Part shown: piece by piece, positions 60,901-63,900 of the stretch | How positions within the stretch are numbered: the stretch's first letter is position 1 | Layout: each line of letters begins with the position of its first letter | Assembly (NCBI GenBank): GCA_964199315.1 | Contig: OZ116710.1 | Location: forward strand, 11,284,001 to 11,348,000 | DNA: 64,000 nt | Reading direction: 5' to 3' | Source of the DNA: Orbicella franksi | Lineage: Eukaryota | The notes under the pieces: model-generated | Seen by the model: the letters and a program-made list of their open reading frames with translations, nothing else | Database searches by the model: none | What the model was told of the DNA's origin: nothing | Position numbers and translations under genes: made by a program

Positions 60901-63900
60901 TATGACAGACAGTTGTGCAACAAATTTATGGTGTTGTATGGGATGCCCTTGAAGGACAAGATTCCACTGTTTGTGTAATGCTTACCTAAAGGCTAAAATT
61001 TGGGCTTGCCCGCCCATCTCATTAAGAAACAAGGAAGAAAAAGTTCATACTGACAAACACTGACTGTGTAGTTAGAAAGCAAGAATGCTGACTGAATTAT
61101 GGTATGTCAGGTATCTTCAGACAGGCCCCTGGCAGCCCCCGTCAGAAAGTATGGAAAGGAGTCTTTTAGCAGGAATTGACTTTACCACAACTTTCCAAGA
61201 TGAAGATAAACTGGTAGAAGGTATGACATTTAGTGTCCTGTAACCAGCCCAGTCATGGCCTATCACTATCACTCAGGTTTTATTAACATGCTAAAACATG
61301 GCTAGTGTTAAAAAACAGTGAGAGACACTGATAACATCAGTCACTTAGCTACACTTAAGTTAGGGTGTATTTTTAACTAACCTTATTCTGGAGACAAGCA
61401 GTTCCCACTGTACAGAAAAATGGCTATTTTTTAATGGAAAATCCAACTCATGGATTCTTTGGAGGTGTTTGCATTTTTTACAGGTGTAGAGTTGTTTTCT
61501 TGTCAAGTGCAACTAAGTGGTGTATTTTCATAGCAGGGTTCATGTCTTCTTTCCCTCTTTAAGATGACTTCTTGGTTTGCTGTGGCCGTGATTTGCATCC
61601 ACTCTCCCTTTCTTACAACAATTATTTCTTACTAGTCAAAATTCAGCCTCATCTACAGCACTGTTGCCACTCCCTGCTCCTGGCCACTTTGGAACAGGAG
61701 CAATGAGATGGGGGTTGTATATCTTGTTATCTACTGACAATCATTTCCCACACTAATCCACATCAACTGGTTGTCATATTATCAACAGGCACCAGCAAAT
61801 TGTTGTATCAAAATATAAAGAAAAAAATATAGATCCAGATATATTCATACAATTGTATTAAGTGCTAATGAAAAGTCATTATTTGAAACTCATAAAATCT
61901 TTAAAAAAATGTAATATGCTCTTGGACTAATCAGTACTTAGGATACCTTTATCATCTGCTAGTTGGCCCATTGCTTTACAAGGACAGCTTTGTTCAGTGC
62001 AGTGGTTTTTCTTTCAGATGTGAAATACCCCAAGGTTGCCAGTTGGGACAGTTTATTCCAGAGCAGTGTATCACGGGTTCTGTTGACTCTAGTTGGCTCA
62101 CCACCAGGTCCAAGTGATCCTAACAGATCAGTGGACATTGTACCAGTCTCAGATAAAGGTAAAGTCTGCATATGGGCCAAGTGGCTCATCAGGCCAGAGC
62201 TTATCCCAGTTTCTGTAGCATGAAGTGACTAGGAGTATTTCTACTCCGCCCTAGATGGGATGCTAATCCATCGCAGGGTTATCCCCCAGCATTGAATTTG
62301 CGGGTACCCATTTATACACCTGGGTGGAGAGAGGCACTGTGAGAGTAAAGTGTCTTGCCCAAGAACACTACACAATGTCCTCAGCCAGGGCTCTAACCCG
62401 GACCACTCACTCCAGAGTCAAGCGCACTAACCATGAAGTCACCGCACCTCCCACTCCAGTCTCTGATAAACAGTCAGTAAAACCTCCACAAATAAGTCCT
62501 ATTCCTAATGGTAGGTACCTAACATAATTTATAATGGCTTCCGATCTGTGCAGTAATCATGAATGAGTTTAATCATGTTGCTATCTAGTGTCACTCTTGA
62601 CTATACTCTGGTTTAGATTTTCCTGAGCCAGATTAAAGACCTTGACAAATCTACATTAAAGCACATAGAAGTTTCCAATTTTTATCACGCTGTCAAAAAA
62701 GAGAAGAGGCACCCAAGAGTGCTGTTCCCTGGGGGGCACTCCCATATAAAAAAGGGCAGGGGTGGTCATTAGAAATTTTGAAAAGAACCCCTAAGAGGTA
62801 CCAAGATCCTGTTTTGTGGGCGTGGCTTAAACTTTTTTCACCCCTAAGAGGTAGCAATTCTAAAACAACACCTTATTTCCTGTTATTGTTTGGGCTGAAA
62901 ACCCTAAAAGATACCACAAAAGCTCCTGCTGTGGACCTATGGAGGCTGAACACCTTAAGAGGTACCCAAACGGCTTTTTTTACGACAAGCACCCCGTCCT
63001 TTTTATGTGGGAGTTCCCCCGGGTGCAGTTTAAGTCACAACTCCATTGTGGTACAATCAATTCCTTAGCAACTTAGAACACTGCAAACTTAGTCTGGTTT
63101 CAGAGATTAGAAGATGCTGCTTATTCCTCTCTGACTGATTCTGCTCTATTGCTTATGTGCTGCATAATTATCCAATAGGTAATACTGAAGCTGAAAGTTG
63201 GACTGTCATTCCTGATTTTCTCACTTTGTCACCTTGTAATTCAAGTAAGCTGCTAATTATTAAATTCTTTGATCAAATGCATTACAGTGTTCCAGATAGG
63301 TGAAGGGTCTCAGGTCAAAAACGCCACAAGAGCAGCTACCTGACCAGAGGGAGCAGGTGGGAGCAGTGGGAACTGACCTGTTCAAATTTCGTGTCGACAC
63401 GCCACCTTGAAAACTTATCTTGAACCCTGCCATTACTGCTTGTAAATGTAGAACAACTCAAAGAGCTGTTTACTCTGTTTCCACACACAGATATGTATTA
63501 GGAACGAGCTGCAGTGTAGCTAACAGCAAATAATGTGTCACTGATTGTAATAGAAGTCATGTTATTTTGAGGAAGATTTTCACTTTAAGGCCATTGAATC
63601 TCTATCAAGAAAAATTGCATTGTAGTCATCTTTTTTGCTTGCACCCTTATATGTTCTTGGCATACCCCATATTGTTACTGTAAGGCTGTGTTCATTTGAA
63701 TTTTTGTATTGCATAAATTTCACTACTAGTGGTTAGGTAACTAAAATAAAGAAATCAACATAATCTTAGTTCTAATGTGTGCTTGCAAGAAAAAAATTCA
63801 AAGGTCAGTTATCTGTTTTTGTGAGTAACATTTTTTATTAACTCTGTCTTAGAGGATGACAAAAGTGGTAAAGGCTCTGAGCAGCTTCAAATTGTCAACT

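Follow-up and report, generated by a model that had tools for sequence, protein, structure and literature searches.

We find that a SINE, inserted in antisense within a coding exon of a coral CEP192 gene, very probably shifted the 5′ boundary of an existing intron and did not create a new one. The locus was studied in the window, by which we mean the whole stretch of 64,000 nucleotides of DNA that was analysed. CEP192 is an essential centrosome gene. Lethality is the expected outcome when a retroelement enters an internal coding exon of an essential gene, and fixed examples are rarely seen. The CEP192 case shows the survival of such an insertion, and the ancestral state, the insertion, the splice junction, and the protein could each be reconstructed from data. 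It also replaces an appealing but mistaken interpretation, made from the letters of the window alone (the sequence-only reading), that this was an intron made by a retrotransposon.

The exons of the window matched the Pfam domains Cep192_D1 (E 7e-16) and Cep192_D2 (E 3e-11), while Cep192_D3 to D8 matched a spliced mRNA contig of the locus, L037 (E from 5e-39 to 1e-33 or better). The identity of the gene as CEP192/SPD-2, already named by the sequence-only reading, is confirmed by sequence matching, with the D1-D8 domain series present across the window exons and the mRNA. The nearest named proteins are the CEP192-like models of Oculina patagonica, Stylophora pistillata, Montipora, Acropora, and Nematostella. 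At the SINE-bearing exon, the window is closest to Oculina and Stylophora, and Acropora is clearly different. Searching protein representatives with the 794-residue exon, we obtained mostly single-exon ORF fragments and one full-length protein, the Nematostella model. For the window's own species, a homologue search with the Oculina residues 2290-2480 yielded neither a full-length model nor a long transcript.

The features around the insertion are listed below. L037 and L038 are transcript contigs, L035 and L036 are SINE-free orthologous contigs, and X40 is a poly(A) RNA run.

62018..62158, plus strand: present, truncated CEP192 exon; L037 is 100% identical over 62016-62162 and continues at 63177; RNA depth about 11x in X40
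62143..62157, no strand: left copy of the target-site duplication, CCAGTCTCAGATAAA; still coding (PVSDK)
62158..62455, minus strand: SINE copy of 298 bp, antisense to CEP192, within the coding exon; now intronic bar one base
62159..62164, plus strand: GTAAAG, the 5′ splice site now used; it is the conserved SINE 3′ end ...CTTTACC in reverse complement
62159..63178, plus strand: present intron of 1020 nt, made of the SINE, the exon remnant, and then the ancestral intron
62456..62470, no strand: right copy of the target-site duplication, CCAGTCTCTGATAAA; now intronic; contains AG 62458-62459
62471..62510, plus strand: former coding sequence, with 39 nt for QSVKPPQISPIPN and then the G of a Gly codon; now intron
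62511..62516, plus strand: abandoned ancestral 5′ splice site GTAGGT; homologous donor in L035 and L036; unused in L037 and L038
63179..63244, plus strand: following CEP192 exon, with phase 1 entry and coding for (G)NTEAESWTVIPDFLTLSPCNS; L037 aligns over 63177-63244 and continues at 63853

The truncated exon encodes ...VKYPKVASWDSLFQ...SVDIVPVSDK and the first base of a Gly codon, and its last base, G62158, is a SINE base. Several elements named or implied by the sequence-only reading were located where it had them, namely the AG at 62458-62459, the GTAGGT at 62511, the acceptor before 63179, and the TGA at 62221-62223 that ends read-through from the exon (ORF 61963..62223). Its exon at 63179, joined in phase 1, is where the mRNA contig enters. 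L037 places the donor GT of this next exon at 63245.

The junction used in RNA

We mapped three raw poly(A) RNA runs (X22, X24, and X40) and one DNA contig run (X20) on positions 60001-66000 of the window (L032). RNA depths are means over 200-nt bins of this segment, and the support from the raw reads is support by depth. In the bin 2001-2200, which holds the exon 62018-62158, the depth was 1.6, 4.0, and 7.8 in X22, X24, and X40, respectively. The bin 2401-2600, which contains 62460-62510, showed depths of 0, 0.06, and 0.02 in the same order. In X40, the exon itself stood at about 11x, similar to the neighbouring exons (about 8-13x). Inclusion of the 51-nt piece 62460-62510 would bring the X40 depth of the latter bin to about 2.8, but the observed value was about zero.

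Scanning the JGI metagenome and metatranscriptome contigs for the exact 62158|63179 junction sequence, we found it in two contigs, L037 and L038, whose JGI sample numbers are adjacent and which may come from a single project. L037 is a spliced mRNA of 4318 nt on the minus strand, with 26 exons from 54558 to 75385. Its exons are 95.7-100% identical to the genome, most of them 100%, and its frame of 813 codons is open to a natural stop. L038 has the same junction and is about 96% identical in introns, and therefore comes from a different haplotype or a close species. This contig still retains two downstream introns yet lacks the SINE-containing one, which is therefore removed efficiently. At the junction, a 6-nt overlap (AGGTAA) fits both sides; the sole GT-AG solution is the intron 62159-63178. 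A product spliced in this way would read GATAAAG|GTAATACTG, and 62460-62510 is missing from both contigs. We are highly confident that the RNA joins the SINE donor at 62159 to the exon at 63179 and skips the 51-nt piece. This in-frame form was what the sequence-only reading had given as its alternative, and it is the one borne out by the two contigs and by the near-zero RNA depth.

The form that the sequence-only reading had preferred was a new intron of 301 nt (62159-62459), with 62460-62510 kept as a 51-nt exon and a product ...VPVSDK-VSDK-QSVKPP... that duplicates four residues. Its junction would read GATAAAG|TCTCTGATAAACAG. We regard this form, whether as the main or as a regulated minor product, as highly improbable, although a rare or stage-specific isoform with 62460-62510 might exist. 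Each part that it needs is present, including the donor at 62159, a CTAAC motif, a C-rich tract, and the AG at 62458-62459; its product is in frame, and the 39-nt remnant is still open and similar to the orthologues. However, the 51-nt piece is skipped in both transcript contigs, and the depth over it is about zero in all three poly(A) runs, against about 8-13x for the neighbours in X40. Where a 62510/63179 join was expected, L037 and L038 join 62158 to 63179, and the duplicated VSDK is lost with the absent piece. No use of the AG 62458-62459 was seen in L037, in L038, or in the depth of the three poly(A) runs. The CTAAC motif proposed as branch point does exist, but at 62427-62431 and not at 62426-62430. 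A C-rich, T-poor tract makes a weak acceptor, given the binding of U2AF, and such a tract before the AG may explain why it is not used.

Two other repeats were observed in introns of the gene. A second repeat family occupies 62690-63010, in the same intron as the SINE, with internal units such as CCTAAGAGGTACC; it showed high depth in the RNA and DNA runs, with many loose ends at 62772 and 62828. A long compound microsatellite of TA/CA type lies at 69540-69900 in a downstream CEP192 intron and reads YIYIYI/CICICI in all frames.

The ancestral exon and the age of the insertion

With the ORF that spans the exon and continues into the SINE as the query for orthologues, we retrieved genomic ORFs of many other corals. 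Two of them (P0001 and P0002) carry the SINE at the same place and read ...VPVSDKGKVYI.... Ten genomic ORFs from other corals (P0003 to P0012) have no SINE and read straight through, e.g., ...SVDIVPVSDKQSVQPQQTSPIPNG and then the intron. In these ten, and in the NCBI models of Oculina, Stylophora, Montipora, and Acropora, VSDK or a variant of it is followed without interruption by 12-17 residues and then NG. The uninterrupted exon reads ...VPVSDK-Q.V.P.Q.SP..N-G... in at least 10 other corals, and a coding homologue of 62471-62510 was found in every orthologue examined.

At the DNA level, the SINE-free contigs L035 and L036 align across the insertion point as ...GTCTCTGA[CT]AAACAGTCTGT...AATG|GT donor. 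The donor homologous to 62511 is AATG|GTAGGT in L035 and AATG|GTAAGT in L036. At the codon of 62151, these two empty sites and L034, a contig with the orthologous SINE, all read TCT; A62151 is therefore a later synonymous change in the left copy of the duplication. On these alignments, the SINE is an insertion into a formerly continuous coding exon, of which 62471-62510 is former coding sequence and 62511 the old donor. The sequence-only reading had proposed just such an insertion, and had expected CEP192 orthologues to show one uninterrupted exon with a single VSDK; this is the state of the SINE-free corals, in which 13 residues follow the single VSDK.

It could be argued that the direct repeat is coincidental and that 62460-62510 never coded, the exon having always ended at 62158. 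Taken alone, forty open bases and an in-phase GT would say little against this. But the 13 or so residues sit in one uninterrupted exon in every orthologue examined, and the DNA of SINE-free species can be aligned through the insertion point and has its donor where 62511 falls. Moreover, the G|GT of the donor belongs to the conserved terminus of the SINE itself. A coincidence of this kind is next to inconceivable.

The same comparison bears on intron gain. A mobile element did enter a formerly continuous exon, as a gain would have it. However, its flanks were not rejoined by two new splice sites, since 62158 is joined to 63179, and the orthologues have no intron fewer; the same two exons are present, with the 5′ boundary of the intron between them moved upstream. 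With flanks not rejoined and no extra intron, the event is therefore not an intron gain.

We also checked how widely the insertion is found. Sampled words of the 421-bp SINE stretch were present at a fraction of 0.53-0.92 in 14 DNA contig runs from eight studies, the runs carrying two species labels or being coral metagenomes. A third label (organism D) is represented by contigs that cross the left junction from exon to SINE and resume at the SINE head. In the contig L034, the SINE occupies precisely this site as well; over 1.9 kb, most of it intron, L034 and the window share only 86-88% identity. From the 14 runs, the organism D contigs, and the L034 site, the insertion is therefore old and shared, and neither private nor a null allele. 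It is also widespread.

The read-through stop at 62221-62223 would fit a null allele or pseudogene, assembly-specific or polymorphic, with function supplied by a SINE-free allele or paralogue. This is exceedingly improbable. Apart from the presence of the SINE stretch in those 14 DNA runs under at least two species labels and in the diverged coral of L034, the genome has a single copy of the exon upstream of the SINE, and the mRNA of the locus is in frame to its natural stop with all the C-terminal domains. Moreover, 62471-62510 has no RNA reads, though a SINE-free allele would express it.

In the SINE-free orthologue L036, the intron that immediately follows the orthologous exon has, at 387-660, a sense-oriented copy of the same SINE superfamily. 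It records a separate insertion event in another coral, no more than about 100 bp away from the same exon.

The SINE family and its tail as a 5′ splice site

The CEP192 copy is flanked by a 15-bp direct repeat, CCAGTCTC[A/T]GATAAA, at 62143-62157 and 62456-62470, with 14 of the 15 bases matching. Performing a copy search, we found more than 4257 candidate copies of the family in the 497-Mb coral genome that the window belongs to, the best of them 90-91% identical to the element at 62158-62455. We aligned the CEP192 copy with 30 other copies and their flanks to examine consensus, tail, and duplications. The family is about 297 bp long, starts near GGGAGGCGCGGTGGCC, and ends in ...GCAGACTTTACC in 27 of the 30 copies. 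The end is usually followed by repeats of TTTACC, TTACC, or TACC ((TTTACC)n-like), and the other copies are flanked by target-site duplications of 15-18 bp. With its short length, lack of coding capacity, high copy number, target-site duplications, and simple-repeat tail, the element has the marks of a SINE. The antisense SINE at 62158-62455 with its 15-bp duplication, as called from the letters alone, is upheld as a member of a high-copy family.

Between the CEP192 copy and the majority consensus, 27 of 297 sites differ (9.1%), 11 of them by CpG transitions; its CpG count is 6, against 17 before the loss. The other copies lie at a median of 2.4% from the consensus, and the CEP192 copy is therefore an old one.

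The sequence-only reading had further called the SINE tRNA-derived. While the SINE itself stands, the derivation of its head from a tRNA is weakly supported by sequence similarity. The Rfam tRNA model scored 21.3 bits (E 0.061) on a young family copy with GGTTCGAGCCC, which is below the gathering score of 29. An Rfam search of the CEP192 copy itself gave no match, and ARAGORN found no tRNA in the CEP192 copy or in the family head. An older antisense copy of the same family, 79% identical, was observed at 40562-40831, near the 5′ part of the CEP192 locus.

We compared the donor with the family end. G62158 and the GT at 62159-62160 complement the conserved terminal ...ACC that 27 of 30 family copies have in common, and the pre-insertion target, ...GATAAA|CAGTCA..., has no GT at the donor position. 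By this comparison, the GT in use lies in element-derived sequence. The sequence-only reading had placed a donor G|GTAAAG from the SINE tail at 62158|62159, and it is both present and spliced. The mature mRNA uses this SINE-derived donor with the frame kept (L037 and L038; 813 codons, Cep192_D3-D8).

We propose the following course of events. In an ancestor of the coral lineage, a tRNA-like SINE retrotransposed in antisense into the single-copy CEP192 gene, where it split an internal coding exon between the codons for ...VPVSDK and those for QSVKPPQISPIPN-G. In this orientation, its conserved 3′ end (...GACTTTACC, often then TTTACC repeats) reads G|GTAAAG, a near-consensus 5′ splice site lying exactly at the upstream edge of the insert. 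The spliceosome now joins this donor to the acceptor that the exon at 63179 already had, and the SINE, the right copy of the duplication, the last 39 coding bases, and the old donor at 62511 are removed together within the enlarged intron 62159-63178. Read-through or exon-skipped forms would presumably have been selected against.

The protein product and related systems

The new donor is in phase 1, the same as the old one, and the exonic G62158 stands in for G62510. With G62158 in that place and the GT of 63179-63180 after it, the Gly codon GGT is therefore rebuilt. The protein reads ...VPVSDK-G-NTEAESW..., compared with the ancestral ...VPVSDK-QSVKPPQISPIPN-G-NTEAESW.... The change is a clean deletion of 13 residues (QSVKPPQISPIPN) with no substitution. 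It falls between Cep192_D5 (residues 215-392) and D6 (residues 418-521) of the L037 protein. The D5-D6 linker differs in length among Stylophora, Oculina, Acropora, and Nematostella, and the deletion may be tolerated because the linker is variable. As judged from its translation, the protein is otherwise intact apart from the 13 lost linker residues.

A separate deletion of five residues was seen in the same D5-D6 linker (62100-62130), where the window reads GPSDPNR and other corals read GSSPxN[KR]PDPNR. The SINE-bearing L034 lineage has this deletion too.

In general terms, the CEP192 case belongs to a known class, in which a 5′ splice site derived from a transposon truncates an exon and an exonic insertion is rescued. 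Alu copies in introns act mainly through their antisense poly-T, which gives rise to a 3′ splice site and an additional exon. The CEP192 SINE is a mirror image of this, its antisense tail giving a 5′ splice site where that of Alu gives a 3′ one. Antisense SINEs (Alu and MIR) are known to cause exonization and to provide alternative 5′ and 3′ splice sites (Sela et al. 2007, PMC2394776). As in those elements, an antisense SINE supplies a functional splice signal, the terminal low-complexity tail is read by the spliceosome, and the antisense orientation matters. Unlike them, the CEP192 SINE has a (GGTAAA)-type antisense tail that makes a 5′ splice site and not a polypyrimidine tract. It also lies in an internal coding exon, and the result is a shortening by 13 codons, constitutive as far as seen, with no new alternative exon.

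'Intronization' by Alu has been described in the last exons of 3′-UTRs, with both splice sites in or near Alus (Sela et al. 2007, PMC2394776); the product is a new, alternatively retained intron with both exon flanks kept (PMC2394776). The CEP192 case resembles it in that an exonic SINE is spliced out of the mRNA. It differs in having a new donor only, no added intron, a lost downstream flank, and an internal coding exon as its site.

Introner elements drive intron gain by DNA transposons (Gozashti et al. 2022, PMC9860276; review PMC11282704). Like an Introner, the CEP192 SINE is a mobile element that brings one splice site, and its target-site duplication could in principle give the other; the preferred model of the sequence-only reading drew on this parallel. 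However, the duplication-borne AG is unused, the intron number is as in the orthologues, and the element is a retroposed SINE and not a DNA transposon.

Exonic Alu or L1 insertions of the disease type cause exon skipping or cryptic splicing and are recent deleterious alleles. In CEP192, too, an exonic retroelement insertion redirects splicing, but this SINE is old, common to diverged corals, and in frame, and its spliced product is the only expressed form seen. The case gives a concrete and testable route by which an intron boundary jumps and a protein linker is shortened in one step.

It is conceivable, though we consider it unlikely, that antisense copies of the family, each with a (GGTAAA)n donor at its leading edge, routinely buffer exonic insertions. 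In that case, shifts of intron 5′ boundaries and in-frame exon truncations would arise from the family repeatedly across the genomes of corals, and a stronger duplication-borne AG could occasionally give true intron gains.

Contigs of other corals contain three further ORFs (P0013, P0014, and P0015) that run from unrelated sequence into an antisense SINE tail (...GKGKVCIRAKWLIRPELIPVSVA). By eye, the upstream part of P0013 appears to resemble a polycystin-type membrane segment. These three could be candidate exons ending at a SINE-tail donor, or intronic copies close to exons.
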